From positions 10,354,001 through 10,418,000 of the forward strand of contig OZ176053.1 in NCBI GenBank assembly GCA_964247055.1: a DNA stretch of 64,000 bases, written 5' to 3'. The notes below the pieces were generated by a model, which saw only the letters and a list, made by a program, of their open reading frames with translations, searched no databases and was not told where the DNA came from. Source of the stretch: Paragordius varius (taxonomy: Eukaryota; Animalia; Nematomorpha). A program made the translations under genes and the position numbers. Shown piece after piece: positions 24,409-64,000 of this stretch. Position 1 is the first letter of the stretch. Every line of letters starts with the position of its first letter.

Positions 24409-24443
<35 letters not shown>

Positions 24444-27829: not shown

Positions 27830-27881
<52 letters not shown>

Positions 27882-30800: not shown

Positions 30801-33800
30801 TACTGATGCCGACAATGGAGTCTATGAATGTAAAATCTGGAACAATTTGGGCGAAGATTGGACCAGGGGTTCTCTTTATTGCTCTGGTATATGGCTTTTT
30901 TATTAATTCCTAAAAACTTTTATATTATTTTTAATATTTTTCCGATCAAATGTTAGCTAAACTGTCCTGTGGATAGTTCTAATCAGGAATGTATTGAAAT
31001 TTATTTAGCTGCCCCAATAATTGATCAATCTTCGATCAATCCGGAAAGTTACAAAGAAATCCAAAAATTAGAATTTTACAATCGAAAATTAGCTGAGGAA
31101 GAACGAGGAAAGCTTTTGATGGATGAAATTAGAACTACACAACCTCCTAAATTTTTATCGCAATTTCCGCCAGAGCTAACGGCTAACGCTGGAGATAATA
31201 TAAATTTGGAGGCTAAGGTTGAGACCTTTAATGATCCTAGCACTGTTGTGGAATGGTTTCATAATGGAAAACCTATTATAAATAGTAAAAAATATGCATG
31301 ATAAAATTAGTTTATATATTATATATGATTTAGTTTCATTATCAATATGCACTTCTTTTTTTCCGAATCGATATAGCCCAATTTTTCCTTTACATTTTTA
31401 AGGTTGCCGAATAACACCAACTTTCAATTTTAACTTCGCTACACTTAGGATTAATCCTTCGATTATTGAGGATTCAGGCATATACACATGTAGAATACGC
31501 AATCGATCCGGGGAAGATATTTTACAGACTAACATAATTTTGACAGGTATTATAATGATTTTGATATATAAAACAATTATCCAAAGAGTTAACAGTGAGT
31601 TTTGACATGAGTCTAAAATGAATATCTCTATTTTAATGTAGTTAATTTTTTTGAAAAAAATGGTAATAATACAGACAGTATTATGAACATAACCAGGGTA
31701 TCCTGAATGAAATATCCAAAAATTTAATTTATTTAAAGGTGAAAAAGCTATAGACAACAACCCAATTAATCCCGAAGCTCTCAGTGGCGTTCGTAAATTG
31801 GAAGCCATGTATGATGCTGAAAAATATAATATCCAAATGCAAAAGGAATTACAGCTCAAAAAAACCGAAAGTCTAGGCCAGAGTCCACGCTTCCTAAATG
31901 AATTTGGAATCATTCGCCTTCAAGAGGGTGCTACTGCTTTATTCAAGGCCAAAGTCGAGCCAGATAAGGATGCGAGTTTGCGGGTCGAATGGTTTTTGAA
32001 TGGAAAACCTTTAGTTATGGGTTTGAAAATTTATATATTTGTAAAAAAATATTGGATATGGATAAGTTTTATATAAATCTATTTATATTATTAGGAAATA
32101 GGCACCGCACTTTGAATGATTTTGGATATGTCGGCCTGTCAATACGTAACGTTAATTCCAATGACAATGGAATTTATACGTGCAAAATTTCAAATCCACA
32201 TGGATCTGCCACATTAGAGGGAGCCATAGAATGTCAAGGCAAAATTTAATATTTAGATAATTTTGTTTTGAGTTAATCACTTATGTGCGCTTAGGAACGC
32301 ATAAAGCTCGATTCTTTTTTGAATATTAATTTTGTGAATTCGATTTTTATAGCTTTCATAATAATTTAATTAACAAATAATTATAGATCATCCGAATGTT
32401 CAAACAACATCTCTTAACCCTGAGAGTCTGTCAACCATCCATAGATTGGAATATCAAAAACCCGAGCGCGTCACAGAAACAGGCAAATCTTTTGGAGTTC
32501 CACAATTTATTCGTCCGCTACAAGAATATTTTGGAGACCTAAAGGAAGGTGATAGAATTAGATTGGAGGCACAATATGTTCCGTATGATGACCCAAGTCT
32601 TCAAATTTCTGTTCTAAAAAATGGAAAACCTATATTAGCAGGTTTTGATAAATAAAAAAATCTGTCCATAAATTTTTTTAACACTCATTAAAAAATCAAA
32701 ATATTGTTTAGGTTCAAGGTTTCGATTAATTAACGAATTTGGCATAATATTATTGGAGATATTTGATTTGAATGCCCAAGATTCTGGAATGTATGAATTC
32801 GTGGTTAGAAACAATAATGGGGAAGCCATTTCACAGTCTTCTCTCAATATCACAAGTATTTGATTAAGATTTTTTGAAAAATGTTACAATATAAGTAGAT
32901 ATTGCTACTATTCTTTAATTATTGCCAGATAGCTTATTCAGCAAAGGGCAGTATTGGCTTTTTTTTACTTTTTATTATTATTGGCCAATAATAATGCTCT
33001 TTGCCCATATATAATGTCTGGCGATAAATTATAAAGTTATCAAAATGTTATTAAGATAAATCGGTAGTACTCCAACCGCGGCCCATGGGCTGCAGCATGC
33101 GATTCTAAAAGTGCTTGTTTATGGCCATAAATTATTTATTTTTTGACATAATTTTTGGGGTTAAATATCTGCAACTGTGTGAAACACTCATGACTTTATT
33201 ATTATTATGGCTCTTGAGACACGAAAAATATTTTTGCGGCACTTTAAACAATTTTAGGTGAGTGTCACTGTATAAAGGATAAGTCGTTTTTCATGGGATG
33301 GAACATATATTCTTTCCCTAAAAATGCGTATAAAACCATATAATATTTACATTTATATATTCCGTTTTAGGAAACAAACTTATTATATTTTTTGTCGTTT
33401 AGATGATCAGGTCATACAAAATACTACATTAAATCCTGAGTCTTTGCGTCAAATACAAAAGTTAGAGGAATGGGAACACAAAATATTTGAGCGTGGATTT
33501 GATGAGGTCAGGCATGGCGATTCATTTTATCCGCCGCCCCTATTTTTACGGGAATTTCCACCTCAAATCGTTGTATCTGAAGGACAGAGAGTTCATTTAG
33601 AATCAAGAATCGAGCCAAAAGATGATCCCACCCTAATGGTTGAATGGTTCAATAACGATAAACCATTGCCAGCCGGTCAATAATTATTATAATTATAAGC
33701 CGTTGCATTAAATTGTGTGTCATGTTTTATGTAAATAAGTTGCTTTTATGTACAAAATTATGTGTTTTGCATATTATAATAGGTGATCGGTTCAAAACCT

Positions 33801-42310: not shown

Positions 42311-45300
42311 TAATTATGGACAATGAACTTTAAATTATTTTTTACAAGCGGCTTATAAATTTATTTGCCAAAAATTTTAACGACAAACTAAGAGAAAAAA
42401 ATAAATGAAACTAAAAAAGGTTCAATAAAGTTCACATTATCCAGCATATAGTATATTAAAATATTAAAACAAATAGATGTATAAATATACCTATCCTATT
42501 AATAATTACAACATAATGTACCATATAACACCTACATTTGAATTGAGCTTTTAAGATTCACGCAACCGCAAAAGATAAAAATAGTAATAATAATAATTAT
42601 AATATTAATCTCACAAAGAATGAATTTTTTTTCGAAAAATGCCGCCGACACTCATAAAACATGTTTAAGTTTTTAGTTCCTTGAAAAAACAACAACTTTG
42701 TCTCAAATATATAGTAGGATAATTGAGAGTTCACATAAGATACACATACAAATTTAAAATTTAGAGATTATGCATTTTTTATTACAAGAAAGGAAGTAAA
42801 AATTTGTTGCTATTCTACTAACTTATTACATATTAATGACTTAATAAAATCCATTTTTTTCAAAAAACAGTTATTCCAAAATCGATATTGGTAGCTCTGG
42901 TAAATTTTTCCCCCATAATAAATAATTAAGAAGGTCTATATAAGTGGCTGTTCTTGGTGTCATAAAATTTTTAAATTTAATTAAATTGAAATTTTGAATT
43001 ATATATATAACAGCCATTTCTTAATGAGTAATCTATATATATAATTTTATTTAACATAAACATTACTTGAAAATCATCATATATACAATTTTTTTAGTTG
43101 TGATAAAAATTAACAATAACAAACGATTTGCACAAAATTATAATAATTCTTATTCAATAAACTATATATATGTATATATATATATAAAATTAAATTATTT
43201 ATGTAATCAGGCTCAGGCCTATTTCTCCAGAAGTCTAGAGATAGGTGGTTAGCATGAAATGACAAGTGTCACACTCTTGTAAATATAAACACTTGAAAAA
43301 AAACCTCAAAATTAAGAAGCAATAAATTATTAATATAATATATATAAATTTAGTAAAAAAATATTTTTAATTGGACATTAATTATTACAATTACACTCCA
43401 AGTCTTCATTTAAAATTATATTTTTTTTAAATTAAATTTCCCCTCTTCCCCACCTATTTTTTATCAATCTATTCTTGTTACTGTTCGTAAGATATATTTG
43501 ACAAATCTATCCAAATTAATATAAATGACAACCATATGCCACTCACTCTAAATGCAAAATAAAATTTAAAAAGAATGAGGATTTAAATTTTATTATAACA
43601 AAATTGGGATAGATAAAGAATCCCAATATACATTTAACCATTAAAGTTTATTCTTACCTGATATAAATAAGATTAAATTAGGAAGACATCAATACTAATT
43701 CAAATTCCTATTGTTTTTATGGCACAATGCCTGATAATACCTTTAAAAGGACCTAATGGGCTCTTGACCTACAAGATAAGCTTTATGTATAAAATTCAAA
43801 CAAACCAAATATTTAAGTCAAAATACGACAATTTACATAATATAGTTATGTAATCATAGGTCATGGCAATATATCTTTCTTTCTCTAAGTCAAAAAATAA
43901 ATAAAAGATTGTTGTGTAATTTGAGAATCAATGGAAATTTTTTTTATAATATATAATTTTTTGTATCATCAAAATCTGTACTTAACCTTAATGCCATAAA
44001 TTATATAATATATTAATATATTTAATTTTTTTGTGACATTTTATTTAATATATTCCTGGACAATGGTTACTTGTCAAATTGCGTTGTGTATAAGTATACA
44101 ATTTCTATGATATCTATATTGAAAATTGTTTTTTTACAGGTCTATCGAATGCCAAAGGATACATATAAATCAAATATAAAAATGAAATAATTTATATTAA
44201 TATAATTAAAATATTTTTGCATTATGGAATTTATATTTTATAATTCTGCTAAATTAAAACCAATATTGAAATATTAATTATAAAAGGTGATTTCAATAGC
44301 TCAATGTTTGAAAAATTTGCTGGTAAGTTATTAATTGATTTTTTTATTGGAAGTTGCTTTAATTTTAACGAATCTATGATATTTTTGCATAATGTTTGAT
44401 CATCACGATATTTTTCCATATATAAATTATATTTTTTTAAAAATATATTATTGCTTTTTTCCTTATTTAATAATTATAGTATATACATACACCTGATAAA
44501 AAATGATGATGTATGGCTACACTCCAACGAGGCTTTTAATTTTGACCTTTATTTAATATTTTATAATAATAAGATAAAATAATAATTAATTGATTACTCT
44601 TTCCATTATGGTGCCAGCCAGGTAAAATATATAATAATAATAATTTATTGCATAAACATACATAGCCAAATGTTACAATTTATGAATCTATATAATATAA
44701 CCATAAAAATTATCTATTTTTCCTTCAAAATTTGGAAAATGAGGACTACATTTATTAATGGAAAATGCTTAGATCAAATTTTATTGTTGAAATTCAATAC
44801 TTACTATTAAAAAGTACATTAAAAAAATGAAAAAAAAGCTTGAATTACAATGTATCCTGTATTAGTAATATTAGGAGTTTTCAATATTCATAATGTATAT
44901 ATAATATAATTATAACTATTCAATAACACCTTTTAATCCTATTATAATTCAAATTTATATATACAATATAGGTGTTAGAACATGACAACTTTTTGAAAGC
45001 ACTTTAATTATTTTTATTTATTTTTTCTATACAAGTTTATCTAATACTATTTATCATTCGATTTCAATGGATTTAAAAAAATTTAAATTTAATATTTAAA
45101 AAATAATTATTGTTCTTTACCTTGACAAAAACGATGCGCAGTTTAATGCAAAATCCATCTTTGTTAAATTATTTATATAAATTTAAATCTATGCCTGCTT
45201 TATCATTATTTTATCAATTTTATCTGTAACCTTGTTTAAAAAAGCGTTTTGAAACGTTTATTTAGTTAACACTAAAGCTCGAAATATTCCAGGTCTTTGC

Positions 45301-46132
45301 GATTTTTTATTTAAACAAACACTTTCATTCACGTTTTGATACTGAAATCTCTAAATATAATAATAATAATAATATTTATTGTATTCAAAATAAATTTTTA
45401 TATATTGAGAATCTTACATTTCTTTTCCCAACATTGTTTCATGCATGCATGGTTTGTATAAAAAATTCGCTTTTTAATGACAAATGAATCAAACATTCTT
45501 ATTCAAAATATAAAATTTCTGTTGAAGATAACTTCCTTTTATAGTAATTCGAAAAGGTTGGCAGGCAGGTATGACAATAAATTATTTTTTATTTGAACCT
45601 TAGTCTTTTTATTTTATATCATTTTTTTACAAAGATATTTTAGCATTATTTCTATGCCATGAAAATGAAAAAATATATATAAAAATTTATTTCCAATAAC
45701 AATAAAAAATATATTATCAATAAAGAGTAGATAGATATTCAACCAACCGTTAATACTAATTTATCATCTAATTATTTTCATTTTATAATTATTATTACCT
45801 AATAATATTTTTATTTTCTGGAGCAAACATATTTTTATATTTATGTACGTATGATGGAAACGAAAAAAAGAAATTAATAAAAAAAAATTTTCTCTATAAA
45901 ATTAAAACGTTTCAACAAACCGATCAATAGTTTAGCCGCGCGTGTTAATATCCATGGATTAAGATTAAGCAAAACATTCATAACGCTAACTAACCTCTAT
46001 CCTTATAGAATAGACCCATCAAAATGTTTATTAATATTTATCTTTTTTCCCCAATATTAGATACAAAACATAATGACAAATGGAATATTGGACATACTTA
46101 TAATTAAAACCATAGCCTAGCCAAAAAATCAA

Positions 46133-48823
46133 ATGTACCAAATAATGGTTTCAATGCATTACATTCATGTGTTTACTTACCTTGTACCATTTTTGGTCAT
46201 CTATTCATCATCCCTTATCGTTATTTCCAATCAAACGGACTCTAATATCGAAATTATCGAACATGTCGATATTTTGGAAAGTGAAACTTTAATCAAACAA
46301 CCAGCATGTCAACCACTCACCATTCCAATGTGCAAAAATTTGGGATATAATATGACAACTTTTCCAAACACACTTAATCACGATACCCAGAATGAAGCTG
46401 GTTTAGAGGTCCATCAATTTTGGCCTTTGGTGGAAATCAAATGTTCTCCGTATCTCCGTATGTTTCTTTGCAGTGTGTATGCCCCCATATGCGTAGAAAA
46501 TCATCCAACCCACCTCAAGGTTTGCCGGTCCGTATGTGAAAAAGCTAAAGCCGGATGTGCCCCACTAATGATGAAGTATGGCTTTTCTTGGCCAGAACGC
46601 ATGAATTGCGACTCTTTCCCGGCCGAATCCGATCAAAATATTGAGACATTTTGTGTTGATTTGAATCACTTGGATAAAATCGGTGGCATGGACAAAAGTT
46701 CTACCCTATCGACCATTAATTCCCGGCAAACTACGAACCTATACAAACTGGAATCATCAACGAATCAACCAATCAAAATTAGTCCTTTGTCCCGTGTACC
46801 ATCCGATAAAGTTATATTTACTACCCCCAACGCTTCACAAAATAAAAAGTGTTTTTCCCCATTGGTTCACATACCGTATCTTACTAATAAAAGGAATAAT
46901 ACATATGAATACAATAATAATTATGCTGGAGTAGGTGGAATACAAAATTGTTTTCATGGGTGCCATGGGAGCATATATTTTACTGACGAAGACAGGACAT
47001 CCGCATATTATTGGGTCGGATTATGGTCCATATTTTGTATTGCAATAAGTTTGACTTGTCTCTTAACCAGTTTTATCGATAAATCCAGATTCAGTTATCC
47101 TCAAAGGCCGGTAATATTCATAGCTATTTGTTACATCTTCATTAGCGCTGGTTACCTTATGCGGTATTTTGTTGGAGAAAATAATGTAACATGTACAAAA
47201 AATATATTAAGAACTCCATTACACTATAATATTGAGTCAACTCTAAATAATTTTAATGCAAATCCAGCAAATGTAAACTTAACTACCATACATACAACGT
47301 CTACACTGAATTCGATAAATACCCAAATCGGTGGCCATGTATGTGTCATTGAATTTATCCTCATATATTATTTCCTAATGTCAAGCTACATGTGGTGGAT
47401 TATTTTTTCAATCTCATGGCTACTTTCGTCAAGTTTGGGTTGGGGCGAAAAAGCCATAAACAAATTATCCATATACTTTCATTTGTTGGGTTGGTTCTGG
47501 CCCATGATTCAAACTATATTCGTTATTTTACTGTTTGCCATCGATGGTGATCCTCTTTTCGGGGTATGTTTCGTTGGTCACACTTCTCGCACTAATCTGT
47601 TAGCGTTTTTAATTTTACCAACCACCCTGTATTGGCTGATTGGATCTATAATAACAACCACGGGCTGGATATACCTGATTAAAGCACGCAAGTTATATGC
47701 GAAATATGGAAACTTGACGAAAATGGATTCTTTGGTGTGGAGATTGGGTGCCTGTGTGTTATGCACCGTTATACCAATAGGTATCGTAATAGCATGTTAC
47801 CTCTATGAATACTTGCTGAGAGAAGCATGGGATACTGCTTATGTCACAAGAAATTCACAAAATATAAAACCAATTTTTTGGGTTTTTGCATTCAAATATT
47901 TTGTTACTCTTTTTGTGGGCTCATTCTTTACAGGCGTTTGGGTTTTTTCAAGAAAAACTTTTATTGCATGGAAATCATTTGTATATTCAATATATCGAAT
48001 AATTACATCACCCATTTCTCGCAAGCCCTCAAAGATTGGAGAAGAAGAAAATGAAAAACACATATATCCAAAGATACAGGGTAATGACAAAATAGCCAAA
48101 AATGATTATAATGAAGATATTATTTGTGTACTTAATCCCCGTGTTTTTAAATCTCAACCATCAGTTTTATTGCCCAAAACTTATTCAAACTACAAAAAAT
48201 GGGAAACAGATAAGACAGAATCAAACCCTAAAATTATGTATAAACACCCTACTAGGCTGTTTGAACATCAACGAAATTACAATCAAGAGAAAAGTTCATC
48301 CGAAACTTATCAACCTGGACACAGTAATAATTACACAAATTCGGATCAACCACTCTTGTATAATGCCAACAAAAGTGGTAGCAAGAGCCACAACAAAATT
48401 CATGACAATACCCACATTTCACATCATAACCATTTCTTGAAAACGCATAAAATTCCACCCATCCCACGCCTCCCTTCACTGGAAACAAAATCATTTTATC
48501 CAAAGCTGTATAAAAGTGTATTTAGCGGTGCAAAAGCCTCATTTTCTATGCTTAAGGCTAATCCATCACACCCTAAACATTTATTGCTAGTATCATCCGG
48601 GACAGAGAAAGAAGATACGAGTGTAGGTTTATCACCCAATCAATCCCTTCAAACGAAATCAACACATTTATTAGCGAGCCCTGTAACAATCGATGGATCT
48701 CATGATTATAATCTTCTTACACAGCAAAACACAACTATTCAAATAGCACCTAATAATATTTTTTTTAATCAGGGTACGCCCACAAATCAAGAAAATCACA
48801 AAAACTTTCCTGTCTACATTTAA
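46133..48823 (+). CDS. fzd5/8: Frizzled receptor, Fz5/8 (Dfz2) subfamily, single coding exon, 896 aa
   Basis: Hydrophobic N-terminal signal and 10-Cys CRD with the subfamily-typical HQFWPLVEI and CEKAKAGCAPLM. Seven TM segments with YPQRPVIF, GDPLFGVCFVG, TM6 RLG, and KTxxxW (KTFIAW) after TM7. Confidence 0.95.
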   Translation: MYQIMVSMHYIHVFTYLVPFLVIYSSSLIVISNQTDSNIEIIEHVDILESETLIKQPACQPLTIPMCKNLGYNMTTFPNTLNHDTQNEAGLEVHQFWPLVEIKCSPYLRMFLCSVYAPICVENHPTHLKVCRSVCEKAKAGCAPLMMKYGFSWPERMNCDSFPAESDQNIETFCVDLNHLDKIGGMDKSSTLSTINSRQTTNLYKLESSTNQPIKISPLSRVPSDKVIFTTPNASQNKKCFSPLVHIPYLTNKRNNTYEYNNNYAGVGGIQNCFHGCHGSIYFTDEDRTSAYYWVGLWSIFCIAISLTCLLTSFIDKSRFSYPQRPVIFIAICYIFISAGYLMRYFVGENNVTCTKNILRTPLHYNIESTLNNFNANPANVNLTTIHTTSTLNSINTQIGGHVCVIEFILIYYFLMSSYMWWIIFSISWLLSSSLGWGEKAINKLSIYFHLLGWFWPMIQTIFVILLFAIDGDPLFGVCFVGHTSRTNLLAFLILPTTLYWLIGSIITTTGWIYLIKARKLYAKYGNLTKMDSLVWRLGACVLCTVIPIGIVIACYLYEYLLREAWDTAYVTRNSQNIKPIFWVFAFKYFVTLFVGSFFTGVWVFSRKTFIAWKSFVYSIYRIITSPISRKPSKIGEEENEKHIYPKIQGNDKIAKNDYNEDIICVLNPRVFKSQPSVLLPKTYSNYKKWETDKTESNPKIMYKHPTRLFEHQRNYNQEKSSSETYQPGHSNNYTNSDQPLLYNANKSGSKSHNKIHDNTHISHHNHFLKTHKIPPIPRLPSLETKSFYPKLYKSVFSGAKASFSMLKANPSHPKHLLLVSSGTEKEDTSVGLSPNQSLQTKSTHLLASPVTIDGSHDYNLLTQQNTTIQIAPNNIFFNQGTPTNQENHKNFPVYI

Positions 48824-49166
48824 TAAAAACCATTTTAATTCATATATATATATTGTTTCAGATCTCTCCCTCTCTTATTATCTATAATTATATAGCCAAC
48901 ATCGATTCCTATTTATATAACCAATCAACCAGGATAATCATTCATGCATTTTTAATGATGACATTCTAAACCTGCCCATTAATAATAATCAATGTAAAAA
49001 TGCAATATATTTTTCTTTATTTACATAGTAATATATATTAAAATTGAGCATTTAATTATTTTTTATAATGTGAAATTAAATAAATGTCTATTTAAACAAA
49101 TTCAAGATGATGGTATTAGTTTTATTGCTGCTTCTCTAGGCTTTTAAATGAGTTTATATAGGCTTA

Positions 49167-52100
49167 TTATGTGTTAACCAAAAAATTTCTATATGCATCC
49201 TGTAGTGTCAGTTTTATCCTTTGTGCTGATAGTCTTGATTTGGGGTTTGCATTCCAACACTCTTTAATTATACTGATGAATGGTATTAGGTCCTAAGAAA
49301 TACATGTTATATACATTATTTCTACAATAAATATTGGAAATTATTAAGGTTTAAAAAAAAATCATAGGAAAATAGAAATCTTACAGAAGTGTCAAGGGCC
49401 TCAGGGGAAAATGTAGGTCTTAATTGCTTAGTTACGACTATGTTGGTGACATCGCTTATGGATGGATTATGGGGAACATTGTATTCACAGTATGGTAAAC
49501 CAATAACATTTTTATTTTTAGCACAGGCTACCGAAGATTGCTCAAAACCTTTAAAGTGTTTAAATTAATCGCAATTTAGTAGAAATTAGAAAATTATTTA
49601 TCGAATTAAGAATTCTTTGGAAAATTATTTGCAAATTTTAATATTAAAATAATATTTTTATATAAAATGGAATTTAACCAAAGATAACAAGTCCTATATA
49701 CACACATTTATATAGCAAACTTATTAACGATTTTTTTATTAATATTTAGTATTAATTAAAGAGAAAAGGCGAGAATAGTTTGTGATAAAATCAACACACA
49801 ATATTTTTATTTAAAAAAACATATTATGTATAATTTATCATCATTATTGGAATATATCGAGTATAATCGGAATCGATTTTGGAAGCCGTAATATAGCTCT
49901 GAACCGTTTTGGAACCGAAAATATCCCAGAAACGGCAGACGTTTTGAAAACCGTATATTTGTTATATTTATATTTCTTCTAAATTTTTATACCATAAGAA
50001 TATTTTTTCATTTTTAGAGAAAACTATCATAATTTGATTCGTTGTGGTTTATTTTATGCTTTGTAGTAATTACATTCAGTCCAAAATCCTAGCTTCTGTT
50101 TTAAAAAGACGAATGTCAAGTTTGATTAAAATACAATAAAACCATTTTTGCAAAAAACGGAACAAGAGCCAAAGCTAAAAAACTGACTCTGGTTCCAAGG
50201 GAATTACTTTTGGGGAAGTAGGCATCAAGAATTTCCCAAAATACTAAAGCAACTGAATAGAGATCAGCGTATTTTAAGGCCTCAAAAGTTTTCTCCATTT
50301 TTTCCGTTAGAACTTCAGGTGCCATGTATCGTTTTGTCCCAACCTTATTTAATTAGAATCAATTATTATTCGGAAACCTTTAAATTAATGTAGGTAAAAA
50401 GCACAACCATTTTTTTAAATATTCTAATCAAAGTAAACATTTTTAAGACCAGGATTACTTTATTTAAACTTAAACTCTTTATGAAGAGACTAATATCTGA
50501 CTGCTTATGAGTGGGTCAGTCATGGTCTTAACCAGTAAACGAAATTAAATCAAGCTGTTTTTCATATTGATATTATTATTATTAATGACATAAAACTAAA
50601 AAACTAACAAGTTTTTTAATTATTGTACCAATATATTATATATCACATGATTAACATATGTTAAAAAGAGTTGCACTTGTTGCCTATTTTATAAGCGACA
50701 ACAGTTAGTGTCATGAAGGACTAATAAATCAGACCCATATCTAGTTCTCCTTATTTGGAGTTACCTAAAGAAATATTGCTGAATCGTTAATATATTAGTT
50801 TAAGAAACTCACAAACTAAATACTAACCTGAATATTAAAGCTTTCGTTTAAACAACTTCCCTTTTCTACGACAGCCAACCCCAAATCGGAAATGCAACAT
50901 GTGGCTGGATTGCAATTATTATTTTTTATAAGTATAGTCGTTTGTTTAATGTATTCATCTTCGGTTAAGATATTTTGTGGATGAATGTTGGAATTTAATT
51001 GAGTTTTAATCTTTTTGTCGTTCGCTAAATGTTCCGCGCTGTCGAAAAACCATTGAGATGAACCATATGTTGGAGGATACAAGGGAGACACTGTTTGACA
51101 TAAATGTAATTTATAATTTGTAAAAAATTAGGCCAAATATTCCAATTATACTGTAACATTCGAATTTTTAAACAAAATTTTATAAAAAATGTTAGTGATT
51201 AACAGATCTATACTTAAGTTTTAAGAATATCAGGAGAGGTGGTTATTATCCAAAAAAGTTAATTATATTTACTAGTATTCACTTTTTGGCAAATATCCTA
51301 AAATATTTTTTTGTATGGTACATGGTATTTATTTTATCAAAAATTTAAACCTCGAGGTGCGTTAAATACTCAATGAAAAAAGCATCAACATGTGGAAAAA
51401 TTTAAAATGTGTGCTAAGTTTACCGATAAAAATCAGTTTTACATTGAAATTATTGCATCATACTGTAATATAGTTGTTTAATTATAATGCAAACACATTT
51501 AATCGAAGCACTTTCAATTTAATAAATCGTAATTAACACGCAATACCTTTTAATTTTATGACGATTACATTTTGGTGTAGTTTTGTACCCCAGAGTTTAA
51601 AATTGTAAATAAACTATACTGTATTAAAGTTATTTAATTAAAATTTAATTATCAAGCGTTTTTTCAGTATTGATAAAAAAGCATATATTTACAGTTTAGT
51701 CCCAAATTCGGATAGTTCCACAACACGATTTAAACAACAAGTAATTTTAAAATGAATAATATCATAAATGTATTTTTAAAGCTTTATAAAGATAATGAAC
51801 ACATCCTAACCATAATATACTATTTGCCATTGAATTACCGATTTTTAACCATACCGAAAAAATGGTGCCAATAATTAGAAGAGGATATTTTTTATATTCA
51901 TTAACAAAGGCAAATAATTTAAACATTTTTTATATTCGAATTTTATGGGTGTCTGGGGGAATATACTAACCCAAAAAGGTAATTAATTGTTAATATAAAA
52001 TAGTTAGAAATAAGAATAAATTTATGTTTATACTTTGTACATTTAATAATATTGATTCTAAGTGCTTAATATACGGCATCAACTGTAAAAAACATGTATT

Positions 52101-54713
52101 ATACAACTTCCGATGCTATACAATACATATCATTTATTCTTCAAAACACTACCTTCTTCGAAATGAAAAGTTAAAAAATATTGTCTTTGAGTTTTTAGAG
52201 AAAACTAATTTTCCCAAAGATAAGTATTTGAATTTAATGGGGAAGGCAGCTTTTTGCTTTAAAGGTAAGGAGCGTTTAATTTTAACCTTTTCTTAACCTA
52301 GATATTACAATAAAATAAAAATATAATTTATGGAAGTTAACAAAAAAATGGTCAAACATTTAATGTTCCAAAAAAATATTTATGCGGTTTTTTCGATCTT
52401 TTTAATAGATATGCCGGCCTCAAAAATATGATCATTCAAATCATCATGACTAAGCCAATCCAATACTAAAATTTCGCCATCTATCCTTAATTTTATTGCA
52501 CAATCCAATAAAAAATTAGAAAGAGAGCAAACAATATTGTACCTACTATGCTGGTTGAAGTTTCAGTTTCTATACATTTGTCAGCATCCATAGAGGTTAA
52601 AGGTGTTTGGTGAATATTTAATTGTTCCTCAGGGCCGTCCACAATATCATAATCAAAGGCATTTCGAATCAGTATATTTTTACTCTTTATATCCCTATGA
52701 GCTAAAGCAGATTTGGGATCTACGCCATATATTGGCATATGCAGATACATTAAACCTTTGCTTATGCTATAAGCCAGACTGTATACCGCATTTATACGGG
52801 TTTTTAAGTTGTTTAATGTAACATTATTAGTATTAGGATCATCATTAAATTGTTCCCGTCGAACCTTTTGCAGATAATCAAAAAGGGTGTGTTGACCATG
52901 ATACTCAAATATAATGCAATAAAAATAACGGCTAATATCTGCTCCCACGTAACGTAACACATATTCACTTCGTAAGGAAATTTGTTTGTAAATGTTTACC
53001 TCCTTTTCCCATGCGTCCATGGCCTGCAATTTGAAACATTTGATTGCAATTGGTTCTTTATGGAAATATCCTTGCCATAATTCGATTTGCGCATTTTTTT
53101 CTACATATAAATTTGGTATTAAAGTTATGGTAAAAAATTAAATATGTTAAGTTATGTATTTACCTATCAGGCGATTGAAAGTTATATCATTGATTAATGT
53201 TTTCTGTTGGCAAATATAAGAGTGTGAAGAAACATGGTCATTCTATTTATAATATAACAAATGTGTTTATTGGTCGTTTTAGGGTAATTTTATATAAATA
53301 GTGTCAATTTTTTACATTAAGCTTGCACGCTTTGGACCAAATTTTTAGAAAAAATGGATTGCTTGCATCCAAAAAAAGGGTCAAATAAAGGCGTCAAACA
53401 GATGAAAAAATAAAGTTATTGAATAATATCTATACCTCACGGTTTTGAACAAAACATGGTTAAAATTAAATCGATTTAATTTAGGTCATCGATAAAAATT
53501 TTATTTTGGCAATATTCAATTTTTCTTATTTTTTAACAGTCACGCGTTTTTTAAGCTAAATTTACCATAACCTATTTTATACAATAATAAAAATTTTAAT
53601 TCAAAAATTTATCCCGAAGCTTCTTAATGTTGTTTGAAAAAAAAACAATCAACAGTTTAGAACATTTTGGTTTGCATTTATTCTATTAGGTGACATTTGA
53701 CGCCCAATTTTTCAGATTCTAATAGTTTATCATTCGCTTTATTTTAAAATTTGTGCATAACAACTGCACCTAAATTTAAAAAACTATGTTGCATATATAT
53801 AACTTGAGAGTTCAGTGATCCCTTTCTTCGGTCCAAATCTTTACAATGTATCGAATACGAATATATTTTATTGAAATTATATTTTCCAACGCTAACATTA
53901 GATGATGTTGGTATACTACTGTTACGTTTACCGAATTTCCGTTTTTTCTTTTGAACAATCAGGAGGTACGCCAGAAGGGATGTGAGAACAAGGATGCATA
54001 TTATAAATGCCAAAATAATTTGCACCAATCTTGAATGAATATCAAAAGACGAAGTTTTGTTTGACACCGGGTCAGTGCACAGGCAATCGATTAAGCTAAA
54101 ATTATTGTTCTTAATGGAATATATGGTGGATGGAGGTAGGGATACATTTTCATACTGGCTTGGACTGAATTTAGAATTTCGCAAATCTGTTATATTATCT
54201 AAAAATCATATGTAAAAATTAGGATCGTTTTATGTAAAAGGCATGAAAAAGAATAGTTTTTTGACATTTATGTCAAAGAAAATAAATAATAATCTTAAAA
54301 TTGATCTAAATATGAGTTACCATCTCTCCTATCCATATGAGTAGCTCTGGTGAACGTAACTGGATTAAGAGTTTGCGAAGTCGTTTTCTCGTTTGTCGCT
54401 GAAAGAAAGGTTGTGTTGGCATTGCAAAATTCGAAATCGCAACAATACGTTTCCATGCCCTTGAAATGGCAACGATTTCGACTAAGACTAAATTTCAAAC
54501 ATCCGCGTTTTATAGTGTGACTTCCATGCAACATACTTACATAACACTATGAAAATATAGGGTTTTTTACATTTTTTTCTAGAATAAAAAACAGAATAAT
54601 TTTTCATTGAAAAAAAAACTGTAAAAATGGATTACAAATTATACCAAATTATCCGTCATACAAAATTCGTCCGCGCAACTTGAGCAGCTACATTTGATCC
54701 AATTTTTTGTAGT
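49167..54713 (-). CDS. TGF-beta/activin/BMP receptor Ser/Thr kinase, type-I-like but highly divergent; first coding exon unresolved
   Basis: Exons 54713-54645, 54546-54321, 54198-53804, 53242-53164, 53100-52543, 51090-50828, 50343-50188, 50095-50074, 49548-49385, 49292-49167 (2058 nt, open to TAA). Ectodomain CSCSSC...C...CY...RGC...C...YCCDFEFCN, one TM ([25 protein letters not shown]), then [73 protein letters not shown]. Confidence 0.92.
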
Positions 54714-56892
54714 CTATTATGACAGTCATGGTTAGAATTGTGCAATATTAGTAAAAAATAAAATTTGCTTTTACAATATTTAGAAAGTATAAATAGTTTA
54801 CCATCTAACAGAATAATCTTCTGGATATTCTTTATATCATGAATTGGAAAGAATTTTTTGAAATAAAAAAAATATTTTTTTTTGGTTTCAGACTTATTTT
54901 TATTGCATAGCTGTCCAAATAATAACTGATTCGTTCTTAAAAAATGGTTATGAAAAAGAAAACCTATTTTACTCACGCAGCACTATAGTGTGCCTTGATT
55001 TGCATAGTCTTCAACAAATCGCTATTTTTTATACACATTTTTAAAAAGAAAATGATATTGGCGCCAGACATACTTAGCTACATGTTAAATCTTGTTTTAA
55101 AAATTACTCCTTATAGTTAAAAGCTAAAAAATAACTGTTAAAAAAAGTCAAAACGTGTTTTTTACTACTTTCCCGAGCCTCTATTCTGTTAAACCTGAAA
55201 TATATAATAGTGGTATGATGCAACAATATAAATAATTTAAATAATGGTTAATATGTTAAACCTTGACCAATGTCAAGGTATTTTTTCAGTTTTTTATATC
55301 TATCTACAATTTTGTGTGAGTAACTTTTTTGAAAACGAGGAAACAATGCTAATATGAGCTTTCACTACTACTTAAGTCATTTAAGAAAATCTTATAATCA
55401 AACTCAAATGCGACAAATCGTTTCTAGTGTGCAGGCCGCCGGGAGTTAGTTTGGATGACTATATAGATATTATAAAATTGCAAATGCAAGAAAATTGTTC
55501 TTACTTTATTAGCTTTTTTGACGCTAGCCAAACCGTTTCAAAACCGTCAAGACCGTTTATCGAGCCGGATCACGTCAAAATAGATTTTATTTTTTTAAAA
55601 TTTTGAAAACTAAAGATTTTAGGTTTTTAAAGTGGATTAACATTTTTGTTGCTTAAATGTTTATTTTTTGACTATTTATCCACATTATATAAAATAATTA
55701 GGTTACGCTTATGGGAGCCAAAGTTAAAACTACTTAACTAAATAATCAGTATAACTTTTTCAAGAAACAAAATTAGTGCATCCGAAAACCCTTTTTTAAA
55801 GAAATATGTGGAATCAAAGCTGGAATCAGGTATAAAAGTAACATAGTTCTGGTTTTAAAAACGATGTGGTTTCAATCCAACTATTATGATATCACTGATT
55901 TAAAATTCAAAGTGCTATATCTTTTTAAAAATAGTAATAATCCTATGAAATGATATTTATCTCATATATAATCAAGTTAGGCCTTAATTCTAAATCATGA
56001 TGTCATTCATTGATTAAAATTGTTTTTACTTTTGCGATTGACGATATTGGCCCCTTGAAACGATAAATAATTGGAATTTGACATAAAGGATATATTTTTG
56101 ATTTTATTTTTTATCGCACCACACCAAGCTTTATTTAGTTTTATGCATTAACTATTTGAAACTCTGATAGTCATATTTAATCAATAATCCGTCCAGAAAA
56201 AATCATTTTAACTTTTGTTCCTCATTAGGGCAAAAATACTCATGATCGGTGTAATAACTAATCAATAGGCATTAATAAAAATAACAATTCAGAAACGTTA
56301 GGCAAAGTACAGCCAAATTTTACATATAATAAGAATTCCAATCTAATATTAATTTTAAGGTATGAAAAAGTTAATACTTTTATGTCGGAAAAACAATAAA
56401 TCAAATGGGTCCTATATGATGTGTAAAAAATATTTAAAATTAATGAGTCACGCTCAAAAACAAGTTGGGGAATTATATTCGCGTTGTGTAAATTTTTAAT
56501 GTTCTTAAAATTGTTATTTATTAAAAACATTAAAGTGAGTTGCTAAAAGGACATTCTGTGTCATCAGTTATAGTTAGTTAACTTCTGTTTTTTTATTTTT
56601 GTTTTGGTTGTTTACAGGTAACATAATGATATATATTTATATTATTTATCAGAACTTAACTAAATTAACGGTTTTCATTTCGTTGTTTTTTCTATAACTT
56701 TCTTTATAAGACACCTGATGATTCTAAAATGGGTGATATTTTTGGATATCTATATGATGGAAACAGAAATCTAAAATTCATATTTATAATGAAAATTATT
56801 TCAATTATAACTATTTCAACATCCATAAATTTCATTATCAATATTAACATTCTATCCGATCAACACCACCAATAATAAATTACACTTAAAAA

Positions 56893-59331
56893 ATGGCTTG
56901 TCAACCCTATTTTTTCAAGGGATTTCTCTTGACATGCACCTGCTTCCTATTGGTATCAAATTTAATAGTTTATCTAATTTTATATATTCCCTTTCGGTAT
57001 TTACTTGATCAAAGTTCTAAACATAAATATAACCCCAAAATGTATATTATGTTTATTAGATTTGTGAACTTTTTGATAATATTTTAGCTCGTGGGTTTGA
57101 CTTTCATAACTGTGGGTTTATTGATCAAAGAGACGGAAAATGATATTCAATACATCAAAGTCATGAATGTATTTATGAAAGCTTATTCAGGATTAATCGG
57201 GGTGGGTCTAAGCATTTGCCTTATAGCACTCATTGGGTGTTTTGGTTCCCTGTTCCAAGTTTATTGGATGATTTTATTGGTATGTAATAATCATTTTTTA
57301 TACGCTTTCACTTGTTCAATTAATTTCAATGTCTATATTATTTTTATGAAAATTTACTAATAAGTATCATGATTACCATTGCATAGTCAAAAGAGGGTAA
57401 TTTCTAACTGAATTTTCGGAATGGTTATATACATAAATCCATTAAAATTAGTTAGCGCTGCGTATATGTGGGCTCAACTTTGAAACAGAAAATAACATAT
57501 TATTAGAATAAAATTTATGCAGAGTGGTTGTTATTTTATCTAAATTAAATATAAATCAAATTAAAAAATGCAAACATATATTAATTCGACTGATTGAAAT
57601 TTTACGAAAAATATTTTTATTTTCATAATTTATTTATTGATGAGTGCGAAATTGATATATAACTTGAAAAATATAAATTTTGTTTAATTATGTAGCACAT
57701 CATCTTCATATGCATTATTGTCGTGGCAGAAATTACCATTATAATCGTATACGTCGTCCATCTCCAAAAAGTATAATTTATGTCTAAATCATAGCTCTCA
57801 GATTCATTTCTCTCGTTCTCCAGTGCAAAATGTAAAGGGGTATATACTTTATTTTATTATATATATTGGATTGTTAAATATCACAAAACTCCCGTTTTTA
57901 AGCTAAAATTAGAGCTTTGAGTTTAGAACCAGAACCGACATCACAATTCTAATTATATAGTTCTTAAACGGGCTAAAATGCCTGAAATTGTTGAATCAAG
58001 TTTATAGTTAAATTTTATTTTATTTTTTTGCGAACTTTATTAAATTTTTAGGTAAAACTTGGTGTGCGAATTCTTAAAAAAGTAATTTTAAATTTGTCCA
58101 ATTATAACATTAGATAAAGGTTCCAACAAAATGGGTATGTATTGACCTAATTTTTTATTTTTAGATTCTATTATGAATTATGTTTTAGAAAAATTGTGTA
58201 GAGAAAAATCCATCTTCAAACTTTACTTTTGCAAGCGTGTTTATGGATTACATGATGCCTATCAAATGCATTATAACACTCGTGATATTCATACAGGTTG
58301 GGGATTTTAACTTTTTTTAACATGATTATATTTGTACCCAGAGGTGAACAGTTATAAATTTAATGATCGAGGGGTGTCCAACACAGATATCTTCGCGAGC
58401 TTCTTTGACATTATTTTATTTATTTTATTTTAAGCCCAATTTCGGATGATATAGCTTATAAATAATCTTAAATTTTTGATTGAAGCAAATTTTTTATTTT
58501 TTAACATGTTAGAGACTTTTGCTTACCGAAAAAAGCGTGTTGGACACCGCTTGAAAAATAACCACTCATACACATTTGAACATATGTGAATCACATGATA
58601 TGAATTAAATATATAATAGTGGTATAAAACTTAAATTAGAGTTAAGATCAAATTAATCATATTGTATTTATATGTTTATATACAACTAAAACTTTTAAAT
58701 TTATTTTTTGGCTTCATCATATGAGTTAAAACAGATACTTGCATTCCTTATAACATTGACAAGTCATGTAAATAACTCTGTTATAATTGTTCAGACCAGT
58801 CGATAACCCTATATGTTAAATCATTACAAACAAATAACTAAAATCACTCGTTTATATTTATGTATTAAAGGATATAAGCTATACATTTGTGAATCGAACA
58901 ATGATAAAATTTATCGTAATATTCATATAAACTTTATGTTTTATATACAGGTTTGTCAATTGGTTACAGCCTTGAAACTGGCCATCTTCATTCACATGCC
59001 CAAAACTTTGATTGACCTCAATAATGTATCAGGTACAAGATCTCAACCTTTGGCCCCTTCAATACAACCGGATCCTAACGCGGTTTTAGGAGTTAACTCA
59101 ATCGACACTCCTCTAAATGATGTAGCAAGTGCCCCGGTTATTACCACTGATCTTAGGAAAGATATTGTTGAACTGAAATCCATAAAATCTGTCAAGTCTT
59201 TACAGCAAGGTACTGCCCCGGATATTGTAATAAATCAAAATGAATCGCACAATCTTAATAATGTTCAGGGTCAAAATAATAATAAAATTACTGTAAATAA
59301 TACCATTGATACTAATGATATAGTTAGATAA
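56893..59331 (+). CDS. Tetraspanin-like four-TM protein (internal exons partly unresolved)
   Basis: Exons 56893-56952 (MAC..FFKGFLL, TM1), 57088-57279 (TM1 end/TM2 with LIGCFGS), 57696-57770 (TM3 with AEI), probable 58165-58277 (large loop), 58735-58767 and 58951-59331 (TM4 with VCQL, then tail). I could not close the phases across the large-loop exons. Confidence 0.6.
58368..58553. mobile_element. hAT-like MITE, copy 2
   Basis: GAGGGGTGTCCAACAC ... GTGTTGGACACCGC; interior similar to 33956-34136. Confidence 0.6.
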
Positions 59332-60619
59332 TTATGTAGTACAGTTTATTAGTTTATGCAATGTATTTATAATATAAAAATATATAGACAATTGAAATGC
59401 TCATTTTATGAAGGAATTATTATATACCATGCATCTTATCAATTTTATTACTATATATTTATAATTTTGTAAATAAATATGGTTCCGGATAATATATTTG
59501 TACATTAAAGGCGGCTATACTGATATATGCGTTACATTAAGATTGTATGGACGTACATCACAGATCTAGGTATTTTTAGCACCGGTCCTTTTATAAAAAA
59601 TTGTTTTGCCACGTTAACATTGGGAATAATTATACACATAGACTAATTAGCTTATTCTCATCATGCATTTTTCCGATTTTTAAAACTAAAAAGTTAAAAA
59701 CACCTTTCCACAAATTACTGATTTGGGAGTATTATGGAACCTTATTAACGAAGCAAGAAAAAGCCTTTAATAAATTTCTTAGATGCAGTTAGTTCCTACT
59801 ATCATATACGCATAATAGATTAATAACTACTTCAATATCACAGGATTTTACCTACTTAATATTTTTTAGAAAATCAGTAAACTCCGGAGTAAAATGTACT
59901 ATAATTAATTATAATAGTAAAAAACTCTCACTCATACACTTCCCTCAAAAGGATTATATATAGTCCAATAACCAAATATATAAAAAAACACGATTTTTTA
60001 ATTAAAAATTATTTTGCCATATTAACAAATTTACATTTATTGTAGCTTACATAGAGAAGTCACAAATCAAATAAATAATACTTTGAATAATAATCATATT
60101 TAATTTTTGACACTGATTCACAATAATTTACAATAGGTCAATATGACAAATATACAATAATATCATTATTATAATTAAATTTTCTTTACCATTAACGATA
60201 AAATAATAATGGTTTAAATGATTGTACATTTTAATATAATGTCCACCCGAATACTATATAAAAAATTGGTTGATCTACAATGATAAAAAAAACTTTTGAT
60301 AATTGTAATAATAAATAATAATAATTTTTAATAAATATATGACTATATTGCATTTGCACATAAAATAAAGATGTTTCAAAAAGAGAAGTGTAATATTCTT
60401 TGGGTAAATCATATTTAGTAAATATATATTTTTTTATAATTGGTTTAATGTACATAGATATGTATAATTTACACTGCATTTAAAACATAAATATATTATG
60501 CTAATGAATAAAATGTTAGTAATTGGACTTTGGAGTACACTCTGCAAAACATTTAGATTTTGAGGGCGATTTGGGCATAATCATAGATTTGGAATGGTAA
60601 AATAATTTGGATGAAACTT

Positions 60620-60977
60620 TCAATGAGCTAAACTTGATAATGATTCCTTAATTTTTAATATAAATATTAGGATATAAATTACATATAAAAATAAGTAAAA
60701 AAAGATAAAAGAATATTACATCCTATATTATATTATAACACAATTTGCATGACTAGATATTAAAAATTAACTACCGATTTAATATCAAATAATATAAAAA
60801 CAAACAACATAATTATATTTGAAATCAATACCATAAAAAATGTAAATTAATTAAAATAATAACTTTCATTTCGCGACCACGCGTTTCAATAGGCAATAAG
60901 AGTGCACAAACGGCAGCCAAAATTCCGGATAAGGCATAAAGATCAAAAGCTCCATTTGCTGAATATCGCAACATTAC
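60620..60977 (-). CDS. svop: Last two exons of an SV2-related MFS transporter (SVOP-like); upstream exons lie beyond the window
   Basis: Exon 60977-60864 (AG|GTA ATG...AAA|GT) encodes VMLRYSANGAFDLYALSGILAAVCALLLPIETRGREMK, i.e. TM12 plus the LPIET(K/R)GR motif of SVOP/SLC22. Exon 60646-60620 encodes ESLSSLAH* in phase. Confidence 0.75.
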
Positions 60978-61244
60978 CTATTATAAGAGCAAAATAATTG
61001 AAAAATGTATAATGACCTTATGCTTGTTTAATGCGATATTTGGAGGAATGTTTTATAATTGGGCAATTTGTTATTTGGATAATAAATATTTGATTGTTTT
61101 CTTTGTTTTTGAAGAAAATTAGAGGTTTGTTTTTGGAAAAAAAAATAGTAAATTCACTATAAGTTACTAGCAATCATTTATTGTAATCTACAAAATATAA
61201 AGAGTCAACGGAATATGTATATAAAAAAATTTGGATTGCAACAT

Positions 61245-63300
61245 TTCATCATCATCAGGTCGTTGATTGTCCATTTGTCGATAGCTTCCATATTTTGGAG
61301 CGATATAATTTACGATCGAGACAGTCGCTTTTGGTTAAATGAGTTACGTCTAGGTCATGGCTGATGGTTTGTCCCAATGATGATATGGTCTAGACCGTTT
61401 TAAATTGCCATTGGAGGGAAGTGATATTATTTTGTTAATTTAACCATTTAAGCGTTAAATGTGGCCCCAGTATCTGAGACGATTTGCTCTGACAAAAAAG
61501 GATATTGGTGAGATTAGGAACAGACTATGTATCTTTTTATTTTTATTTGTTTTATCGTTGGAGACATGAGTTGAGATGTTTTTATATTTCACAAAATATA
61601 TTGATTTAAGGGCCAACATTCGCTAGCATATGTGAGTGCTTGGCGAATGGCAATAGTATTTGCTCTTGATTGGGTTTGAAATGTGTCTATGTTTGATTAC
61701 ATACTTAGGTTGGTGAAATTTGGCCTAAGTTTGATGTGTTCGCGTTGTTATGGCGTTTTTAATAATAATATTGGCTGCTATTGTATCAGGGTAATTGTAC
61801 TTGTTTACTATTTCATTGTTTAAAAATGGACAAGCTTTACAAACGAAATTATCAAGGCTTAATAAACTTTATTATGTGAATTGTGCACCCATAGTTGACA
61901 TTTAGTGCATTTGATGGCATAAGGTTAGACTTCGGAGTGAAAATATAACAATGAGCCTGAGATTAAGGCTTTTGTTTTATCTGTTAAATTTGTGTGCAAA
62001 TTTTTCTAACGTAGATTTCCAGAGAATGAATATATTATTAATAAGTTTCGCGGATGCTCGTTATTATAATATCGTCAGCGCATATTTGAACGGTAAAACT
62101 GTTTTTATATAATCAGTTATTACATCCATAATATAGTAATGGGCTTAGGATGGAGCCCTGGTGTAGCCCGACAATCACTGGGAATTGATTGATATCTACC
62201 ACGGGAGTTATCACGCAACTAGTGGTGTTCTCATATAGTAAATTTATTATTTTTATTATCCATTCCGGAATTTCTTTTTTTCGTAAAGCAAATGGACCGC
62301 GAGATGCGATTGAATGCCCGGCTTAAATCAATAAAGAGCTGATATAAGATTTTATTTTTGCATATGTAGTTCTCTTGTAAGCTTCTTAGAAAAAAATAGT
62401 GCCAGAGGTGCAGACACTCTGTTGAAATCCGAATTGGGTTTCGTCAATCAAGCGAGACGTATTTTCCTTTCCATTATAATTTCGAATAATTTTATTGCAT
62501 GTTCAAGTAATTTTAATGATCTATAGCAGGAACAGTTAAGCATATCGCCTTTGTTTTTATAGATTAAAATTATGATATACTTTGGTTCCAGTCATTTGAT
62601 ATTTTTCCTCCGTTATAATCGGATTAAATAGCTTTGTGAAATAGGAATTGCTTCATGTATATTTTGCACATTTCGGTTTTGATTTTCGTAACACCAGGTG
62701 CTTTGTTAATTTTGTATTTTTGCATGGCTAAGCTCACATCTTCTGGGTAATGATTGGGGGTCCCTAATAATTGAGGGTAAGTTTGGTGACTCGACATTTG
62801 AATGCTAAAAATTTAGGGATGTATTGTGCCCATACATTTTGAATGCTTTATTTGCTTTTATGACATTTACCACCCGTATATCTTCTTTATTACTATTGAT
62901 ATTTTTTAGCGTTTTAAAAACTTGTAAGCTTTTAATTTATTCTTCAAATTTTTTGGCCATTTCCAGGTCATTTTGTTAGCTATTATTTTTTACTCTTTTT
63001 TTACCATGATGTTAGCATGTTTGTCATTTTCAACTTTAGAAATTTCCATTTTTTAAAAACTTCTCTTTTCTCATTTAATAGAGGTTTAATATAGTTCTGC
63101 CACAATCATTGGGATTTTGTTTTGATACGTTTCTTACGCAAATTTTGGAAATGTTTGTGAGTTAAGTGTTTTTTAGATGCTCCCAGCCGTCATGTACTTT
63201 TTTAGGAGAATGTCTTAGTTCAGTAGTAATGGTAAATGAATTGATGCTTTAGGATCAAGCTACGTTAAATTGAGAAAATATTTTGGGTGGTTGGTTTACA
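61245..63300 (-). mobile_element. Decayed RTE-clade non-LTR retrotransposon: linker, reverse transcriptase, Cys-rich segment, 3' (TGA)n tail
   Basis: Minus-strand fragments with stops and frameshifts: IYKNKGDMLNC..YR..KLLEHAIKLFEII, IDETQFGF, FIDLSRAFNRI, AIKCTKCQLWVHN, FVCKAC. Ends ACGACCTGATGATGATGA near 61245. Confidence 0.8.
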
Positions 63301-63399
63301 GCTACCATTTTGTAGGTTTTTATATTAAATATAAATTTTCTATGTTGTTTATTCATTAAGACGAAATCTTGAGATCTATGTTTGCCGCTTATGTATGAG

Positions 63400-64000
63400 T
63401 GTAATAGGCTGGGTTATTTTGTTGTTTATAAGAAACAGATTCTAAAAACGGAGGTAACTATCGACATGAAGGTTTCACACTTTATTATGAAGGAGGAAAA
63501 ACGGGGAAATCAGGCGTAGTTTTAGCCATAAGGATAAAAAAATTATAATCAACATAACACGTCATAACGAGAGAATTTTCACAATGCGAGTGGCTCTCAA
63601 TCATTCAACCCTCAACATAATATCCATCTATACCCCTCAACAGGGTCAAAATGAAACTAACTACCAAACAGGAATTCTGGAACCAGCTTTATCAGATTGC
63701 ACAAAATGTTCCCACAAATGACATACTTTATATAGGCGGAGAATGGACACATTAGAATGCACGCCGATAGTTACGAAGGAATACACTGTGGAGTAGGTAT
63801 TGGTTCCCGAAACCAAGAAGGTGAAAAGCTTTTAGAATTCTGCAGTGGCAGATCTATTGATTTCAATATACACTTGACAAAAAACCAGTCTAATGCACAC
63901 ATACAAAAGTGGCAAACACATATCTCAAATTATCTTCGTTTTAATGAATAAACAACACGGGAATTTATAACTAACATTTAAACCTGTTTGCTGATCCGCC
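63400..64000 (+). mobile_element. Decayed AP-endonuclease domain of an RTE-clade LINE, running off the window
   Basis: Fragments NIISIYTPQQG, EFWNQLYQI...NDILYIGG, HADSYEGIHCGVGIGSRNQEGEKLLEFC, with frameshifts. Confidence 0.8.

Follow-up and report, generated by a model that had tools for sequence, protein, structure and literature searches.

On the minus strand of a 64,000-nucleotide stretch of the Paragordius varius genome (contig OZ176053.1; the whole stretch is hereafter called the window), nine coding exons (54713-49167) make up a gene for a receptor kinase of the family that answers to TGF-beta (transforming growth factor beta) and BMP (bone morphogenetic protein) ligands. Comparison with a second nematomorph, Gordionus, shows the predicted gene to be a real and intact derivative of a type I receptor, specific to nematomorphs, with a degenerate GS loop, a nucleotide-binding loop free of glycine, a short L45 loop and an insert in the kinase domain. 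Judged from the same comparison, the degeneration of the GS region, the replacement of the glycine-rich (Gly) loop and the loss in L45 all predate the split of the two nematomorph lineages sampled.

In canonical signalling a type II receptor phosphorylates the TTSGSGSG sequence of the type I receptor, which is thereby switched on; in ALK5 the GS region, as long as it is unphosphorylated, keeps the receptor off together with FKBP12. The L45 loop selects the receptor-regulated Smad (R-Smad), and the Gly-rich loop positions ATP. To our knowledge, the GS box, L45 and the Gly-rich loop have been treated as defining and near-invariant in every type I receptor, from sponges to humans. The nematomorph receptor is a natural experiment on which parts of this activation switch are indispensable. 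The literature searched held no account of nematomorph TGF-beta receptors, nor of a type I receptor kinase that naturally has no GS domain; such wording was used just for BAMBI and type II receptors.

The same receptor in Gordionus

Database searches and folding were carried out throughout with single exons and with the database protein P0001, rather than with the joined spliced product. An exhaustive search of 1.84 billion representative sequences with exon D (52543-53100), which runs from the Gly-free nucleotide loop (53100-53084) to the start of the insert, returned one close match, P0001 (E 3.5e-35, 45% identity), whose source is Gordionus sp. m RMFG-2023 (Nematomorpha). With the exception of P0002, the rest of the matches, none better than E 1e-17, belonged to ordinary type I receptors. 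P0002 was rejected as a relative: it is a repetitive, unrelated kinase protein that matched at E 7e-29 over 15 repeated stretches.

The Gordionus gene lies at a locus on OX940784.2 (L001) and carries the same three changes: ENFPSNYSYYYQQKT, the loop IEKNPQTELW and the L45 sequence GADISRYYY. Its first recognised exon, RIKCFCEPCKMQYCVTDNL, is followed by one open reading frame with the rest of the ectodomain, the transmembrane helix and a juxtamembrane segment ending in ESHEHE. After ESHEHE come a 45-nucleotide intron, exon C (ENFPSNYSYYYQQKTLVNELTFESLI; 79 nucleotides, in the phases of the window), an intron of about 45 nucleotides and the kinase exon, which starts (E)KNPQTELWKGKYQNDNVAIKCY. 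With introns of about 45 nucleotides around exon C, there is therefore no room in Gordionus for a hidden exon encoding a GS box or a Gly loop. The predicted junctions 53804/53242 and 53164/53100 of the window are likewise supported by this orthologue, in which exon C has the same length, the same phases and 50-59% identity.

The public gene model behind P0001 differs at its 5' end from this layout. Translation in this model begins with a Met inside the ectodomain, ..NFTII is joined directly to the kinase exon, and the transmembrane segment is omitted together with exon C (L001 9829-10620). The 5' end of P0001 is, on the genomic sequence, probably mis-modelled.

Altered GS region, glycine-rich loop and L45 loop

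The region before the kinase contains neither SGSGSG nor Leu-Pro. Exon B (53804-54198) encodes a linker, the transmembrane helix and a 50-residue juxtamembrane segment without SGSGSG, and ends RRKGSLNSQ|gttata. A degenerate GS region is found in exon C (53164-53242), which carries SSHSY at 53230-53216 and the alphaGS2-like sequence QQKTLINDI at 53209-53183. Both species share an S-x-x-S-Y remnant just before the QQKT helix, and both keep the helix itself, QQKTL(V/I)N(E/D)(L/I)TF, the counterpart of LLVQRTIARTI, including the Thr that matches ALK5 T204. Upstream of the S-x-x-S-Y remnant the juxtamembrane sequence could not be aligned between the window and Gordionus. Because the two serines of the remnant and the conserved C-terminal half of the GS region survive, the S-x-x-S-Y/QQKT remnant may still be phospho-regulated.

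Exon C closes with the Ile and the first Glu base of the loop IEKNAQI, and the Glu codon is finished by exon D at 53100. This loop stands at the place of the canonical I-G-K-G-R-F-G-E-V-W and holds no glycine; on the window, the kinase domain recognised by Pfam starts at profile position 22-24, past the Gly loop. The L45 loop reads GADISRYFY (52945-52919), which in the HMMER alignments leaves a four-residue gap against ALK5 and BMPR1B and is of the same length in Gordionus. The best-conserved block of the N-lobe surrounds this short loop (LRY-GADISRY-YCI-F-Y).

A gene-model artefact could produce such a picture if a missed exon supplied the GS box and the Gly loop, and the junctions were indeed read from DNA alone, with a different 5' structure in the P0001 model. 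We built a custom hidden Markov model (HMM) of the segment from GS to beta3 from 145 canonical type I receptors and searched it on every stop-to-stop piece in six frames. There was no match to its GS part beyond noise (best E >4) in window 44000-64000 or in 22 kb of L001, the sole matching pieces being exon C (positions 23-39, E 0.5, a weak match) and exon D (positions 44-58). Equally, a scan of all frames of window 44000-64000 for [ST]G[ST]G and GxGxxG turned up neither motif. Taken as a whole, no GS-like or GxGxxG piece was found in these 20 kb of the window or in the 22 kb of L001, which together with the short Gordionus introns argues against a missed exon. The Pfam profile TGF_beta_GS (PF08515) was matched at E <=10 by none of the window exons B and C, the pieces of L001 and P0001, while a control mollusc receptor (P0151) scored 46 bits.

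An earlier note on this DNA, made from its letters, had described a type-I-like receptor that lacks the GS box, the Gly-rich loop and most of L45, and had seen no alternative GS-encoding exon in the flanking introns. The sequence and the exon borders (53804, 53242-53164, 53100) read as it had quoted them. The loss of GxGxxG stands, all three glycines being replaced in the window and in Gordionus, and so does the absence of a hidden exon, now backed by the custom HMM, the motif scans and the Gordionus introns. Two descriptions had gone too far. SGSGSG and PF08515 are absent as stated, but the C-terminal half of the GS region (the QQKT helix with the T204-equivalent Thr) and S-x-x-S-Y are conserved; and L45 is shortened, but by just four residues against ALK5, so that "most of" it was an overstatement. 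The note had also proposed that the receptor cannot signal canonically and may be a decoy or pseudokinase, a GS-independent kinase or a non-Smad receptor, which is more than the sequence supports; the full set of catalytic residues speaks to some degree against a dead kinase. The profile comparison that the note had proposed came out in its favour, with Pkinase found, TGF_beta_GS not found and the control detected at 46 bits.

Type I identity and phylogeny

By sequence comparison, the gene is a type-I-family receptor kinase. Exon D matched Pfam Pkinase (4.5e-11) and the type I receptors of the PDB (E ~4e-18) and is 41-50% identical to Gordionus. Its PDB scores were 69 bits against TGFBR1 and ACVR1, 50 against ActRIIA and less against other type II kinases. 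Similarly, P0001 scored 203 bits against BMPR1B, 182 against TGFBR1, 175 against ACVR1 and 164 against ALK1, with type II receptors at 92-136 bits. The AlphaFold (AF2) model of P0001 (pLDDT 82, pTM 0.81) was matched by fold to the PDB, and the top 50 matches were all type I receptor kinases, BMPR1B being the first.

The maximum-likelihood tree comprised 48 rows, namely 33 type I receptors, 13 type II receptors, the window and Gordionus. Type II receptors were split from type I receptors plus the nematomorph pair at 100/100, and the window and Gordionus formed a clade at 100/99. The pair attaches, with a stem of 1.7 changes per site, in the unsupported basal part of type I; the BMPR1, TGFBR1/Baboon and ACVR1/Saxophone clades, which do have support, exclude it. 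The type-I-like assignment of the earlier note is thus upheld by the tree and by the higher type I scores in the PDB, and grouping with type II receptors was not found.

The notion of an artefact also has a second form, in which the locus would be a type II receptor or another tyrosine kinase-like (TKL) kinase. A first, thinly rooted tree with two type II rows had put the pair beside the root and the type II outgroup, which is a long-branch warning; it was superseded by the tree with 13 type II rows, which places the pair with type I at 100/100. The C-terminus RLSA-RIK-TL and the DLG motif are, moreover, type I hallmarks. In either form we regard an artefact as very improbable.

The extracellular part may also follow the type I plan, with ten cysteines in type I order readable across exons A0 and A. 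Exon A0 (54645-54713), bordered by ag|...|gtataa, carries the first four cysteines of the putative three-finger domain and is 53% identical to its Gordionus counterpart, RIKCFCEPCKMQYCVTDNL. Exon A (54321-54546) ends in a CC-x4-CN box (YCCDFEFCN) and then a Ser/Thr/Asn-rich linker, and is 40% identical to L001 9947-10090 (E 4e-5). All six PDB matches of the ectodomain exon were ALK1 or ACVR1 ectodomains, though weak (E ~0.1), and Pfam Activin_recp (PF01064) gave no match on the separate exons. The single transmembrane helix is a 25-residue hydrophobic stretch (54028-53954) followed by QKKKRKF. At the other end, the stop codon (49169-49167) comes 11 residues past RIKLTLQ, leaving no C-terminal tail.

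Catalytic residues and the beta7-beta8 insert

The window keeps the Lys of IAIK (53050-53039), the alphaC Glu (WEKEV, 53011-52997), HRD..N (HRDIKSKN, 52699-52676), DLG (SDLGLAV, 50890-50870) and APE (read as MAPE; APE at 50322-50314), all of which had been recognised in the earlier reading of this DNA. An alignment of 50 type I receptors has 27 invariant columns, and P0001 agrees with every one of them, K62, E75, H162, K166, N169, D226 and E253 among them. Its only departures are at three nearly invariant positions, G42, G44 and G47, each conserved to 90% or more among the other 49. Loss of the three loop glycines together was seen in none of the 265 other proteins retrieved, which are almost all receptors of type I or type II; single or double substitutions occur in a few. 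By the standard definition a pseudokinase has lost the VAIK Lys, the HRD Asp or the DFG Asp, and loss of the Gly loop is not included. These three residues (with DLG for DFG) are present in both species.

In the window the NILIRN strand is separated from CCISDLG by an insert of 48 or 81 amino acids, according to the splice pair, against four residues at this place in canonical type I receptors; the insert is absent from the earlier note. The insert occupies 52577-52663 and 50900-50956 on the minus strand (up to 52544 and 51024) and is split by a 1.5-kb intron, so that exon E (50828-51024) encodes its remainder and then DLG. The junction between exons D and E is ambiguous: either 52543 is joined to 51024 or 52576 to 50958, and both are in frame, with a coding sequence of 1950 or 1851 nucleotides (~617-650 codons), respectively. 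A splice from just past HRDIK straight into exon E was also considered and rejected, no compatible acceptor yielding a canonical beta7-beta8. In Gordionus an insert of about 47 residues lies between NILIKS and CCISDLG within one uninterrupted exon (L001 ~11135-11275). The AF2 model of P0001 shows the insert (residues 178-213) as disordered, and the Gly-free beta1-beta2 hairpin as confident. Relative to Gordionus, the window kinase has a further 14-residue Asn-rich stretch between alphaD and alphaE (52850-52800).

Constraint and possible modes of action

Exon-by-exon codon comparison of the window with Gordionus gave 43-55% amino-acid identity, with proportions of nonsynonymous (pN) and synonymous (pS) differences of 0.32 and 0.84. 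At this pS the synonymous sites are saturated, so the ratio of nonsynonymous to synonymous rates (dN/dS) against Gordionus cannot be quantified, and the pattern fits long-term purifying selection on the predicted coding sequence. The earlier note had allowed for a neutrally evolving pseudogene; the same altered state is, however, kept in Gordionus with pN far below pS, and because it is conserved in a second genus the receptor is neither a pseudogene nor an assembly artefact.

As to function, we consider it an even call that the gene encodes a still-catalytic receptor with a remodelled activation switch and a remodelled Smad-docking surface, rather than a dead decoy. A catalytic receptor is favoured because no catalytic residue was lost over a divergence long enough to saturate synonymous sites, and because the replaced segments are themselves conserved. 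Such a receptor would still bind ligand and still transfer phosphate, and the way it handles ATP would probably be altered. Its activation would be independent of canonical multi-site GS phosphorylation and of FKBP12 gating, and its docking surface, made of the GS region and L45, would be remodelled, presumably together with the Smad partner. The fuller proposal is a doubtful one that we advance tentatively: a working BMP-type receptor of horsehair worms that is GS-independent, has a Gly-free loop and no FKBP12 gate, and has a docking surface that co-evolved with a modified Smad. If it is true, the gene embodies a different way of solving type I activation, one that the whole phylum has kept.

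Several observations weigh against a catalytic receptor. All three glycines of the phosphate-binding loop (P-loop) are swapped for bulkier residues, and catalysis may be weak or absent. The exon junctions were read from genomic DNA, the contigs of all four runs compared being of DNA and spanning the introns. In the tree, exon D of the window has a very long terminal branch, 1.86 compared with 0.42 in Gordionus. Nematomorphs may also keep a canonical GS-bearing type I receptor; one was sought among the AT-rich top matches, which held only mites, rotifers, Intoshia and Strongyloides. Finally, six of the seven coding differences listed to contigs from the DNA runs X4 and X5, labelled as the same species, are nonsynonymous, among them a P>S change in the conserved LPY. 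This 6:1 excess fits relaxed or fast evolution, in a tiny sample (at least seven differences).

The first of these observations leads to a possible, if not likely, alternative, a conserved pseudokinase in which the Gly-free loop blocks productive ATP binding and the protein acts as a ligand decoy or dominant-negative, BAMBI-like in effect, or as a scaffold. Replacement of P-loop glycines usually impairs ATP binding, and here the three glycines are gone in both species and the loop is left unmatched by the Pkinase alignment, which begins beyond it. The GS region and L45, both needed for docking and selection of the R-Smad, are altered as well, and the branch is very long. Yet the VAIK Lys, HRD Asp, DLG Asp, alphaC Glu, catalytic Asn and APE have all been kept through a very deep divergence. 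The replaced loop is itself conserved (IEKN-Q-ELW-G), unlike the outcome of free decay, and AF2 still gives a confident beta1-beta2 hairpin.

The 6:1 excess, for its part, would suit relaxed constraint or an incipient pseudogene in Paragordius varius, in which the gene, though open, is unexpressed or dispensable. The long branch of the window points the same way, as does exon G, which in one record appears no less variable than the flanking intron. A search of sequencing runs turned up no RNA run with this stretch, which speaks of missing data and not of a silent gene. Against this, the ~617-650 codons are open over nine exons with GT-AG borders and motifs intact, pN is well under pS in the comparison with Gordionus, and the DNA contigs diverge from the window by 1.8-3.7% in exons against 5-10% in introns. 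We hold relaxed constraint to be improbable.

Comparison with known receptors

The BMP type I receptors (BMPR1B/ALK6, BMPR1A, Thickveins, SMA-6) are the nearest known system, BMPR1B being the best match both in sequence (203 bits) and in fold. Shared with them are the C-x-C-x2-C start and the CC-x4-CN end of the putative ectodomain, one transmembrane helix, an L45 loop opening with ADI-, DLG in place of DFG, RLSA-RIK-TL and the absence of a tail. Unlike them, the nematomorph gene is without SGSGSG/Leu-Pro and the loop glycines, its L45 is four residues shorter, it has an insert of 48-81 amino acids, and at ~35-41% identity it falls outside the BMPR1 clade. With TGFBR1/ALK5 it shares the kinase fold (TM-score by target 0.88-0.90) and a Q-(R/K)-T alphaGS2-like helix. 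In contrast to that receptor, the TTSGSGSG loop is replaced by a non-conserved stretch in which just S-x-x-S-Y is common to both worms.

BAMBI has a transmembrane segment and probably a type-I-like ectodomain in common with the nematomorph gene, which could likewise be a decoy, but BAMBI is without a kinase domain, whereas exons D-H encode a complete one. Type II receptors (ActRII/Punt) also have no GS box and share the HRDIKSKN loop; they keep the Gly-rich loop, however, and are separate at 100/100. Type II receptors are constitutively active kinases, which offers a possible functional analogy. Pseudokinases of the ILK type, within the TKL group, have a Gly-poor loop followed by ELW-G; unlike the nematomorph gene, they have also lost catalytic-loop or DFG residues.

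An active nematomorph kinase would reveal a further means of gating type I receptors. An inactive one would be a full-length pseudokinase receptor in this family, distinct from BAMBI, of which no report was found in the literature searched.

Gene structure and genomic context

All exon borders follow AG/GT at every junction, as seen by three-frame translation and direct reading, and the reading frame is kept under both options for the junction of exons D and E. The G+C content of the window is 28%. Downstream of the exons described above, exon F (50208-50343, minus strand like the rest of the gene) encodes the activation segment, APE and alphaF and is 54% identical to Gordionus (E 4e-15). Exon G (49385-49548) carries the C-lobe block LPY..NPS...VV.K.LRP at 53% identity, and exon H (49167-49292) the type-I-style C-terminus without a tail at 69-73% identity. 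A signal-peptide exon was looked for upstream of exon A0 and was not found.

Convergent with the receptor lies a Frizzled gene (46133-48823, plus strand), a single exon of 896 amino acids with a cysteine-rich domain, seven transmembrane helices and a long Asn/Ser-rich tail; an ESM Atlas search confirmed that this neighbour belongs to the Frizzled family. A Frizzled gene adjoins the receptor on the opposite strand in L001 too, and the two Frizzleds are 41% identical. At just 41% identity between these shared neighbours, the two species lie far apart in evolution, and the receptor loci are orthologous.

Over window 49050-55040, contigs from X4 and X5 are 5-10% off the window and hold at least two haplotypes in the intron between exons B and C. 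The low-depth runs X3 and X6, labelled as two other organisms, hold many contigs that are at least 99% alike to the window over the same interval. This pattern across X3-X6 could stem from cryptic lineages, from mislabelled runs or from parasite DNA carried in samples of the host. Within the intron between exons D and E, the summed depth of contigs from X4 and X5 rises about five-fold over the stretch 51450-51660, where loose ends are also numerous, and the stretch resembles a dispersed repeat; clear terminal repeats were looked for there and none were found.

Elsewhere in the window, at ~20800-33700 on the plus strand, pieces of open reading frame end in ..EPKDDP.L.VEW..NG.P.., typical of titin/kettin-type immunoglobulin (Ig) repeats. 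By their sequence, these pieces probably belong to a large muscle Ig-repeat gene.

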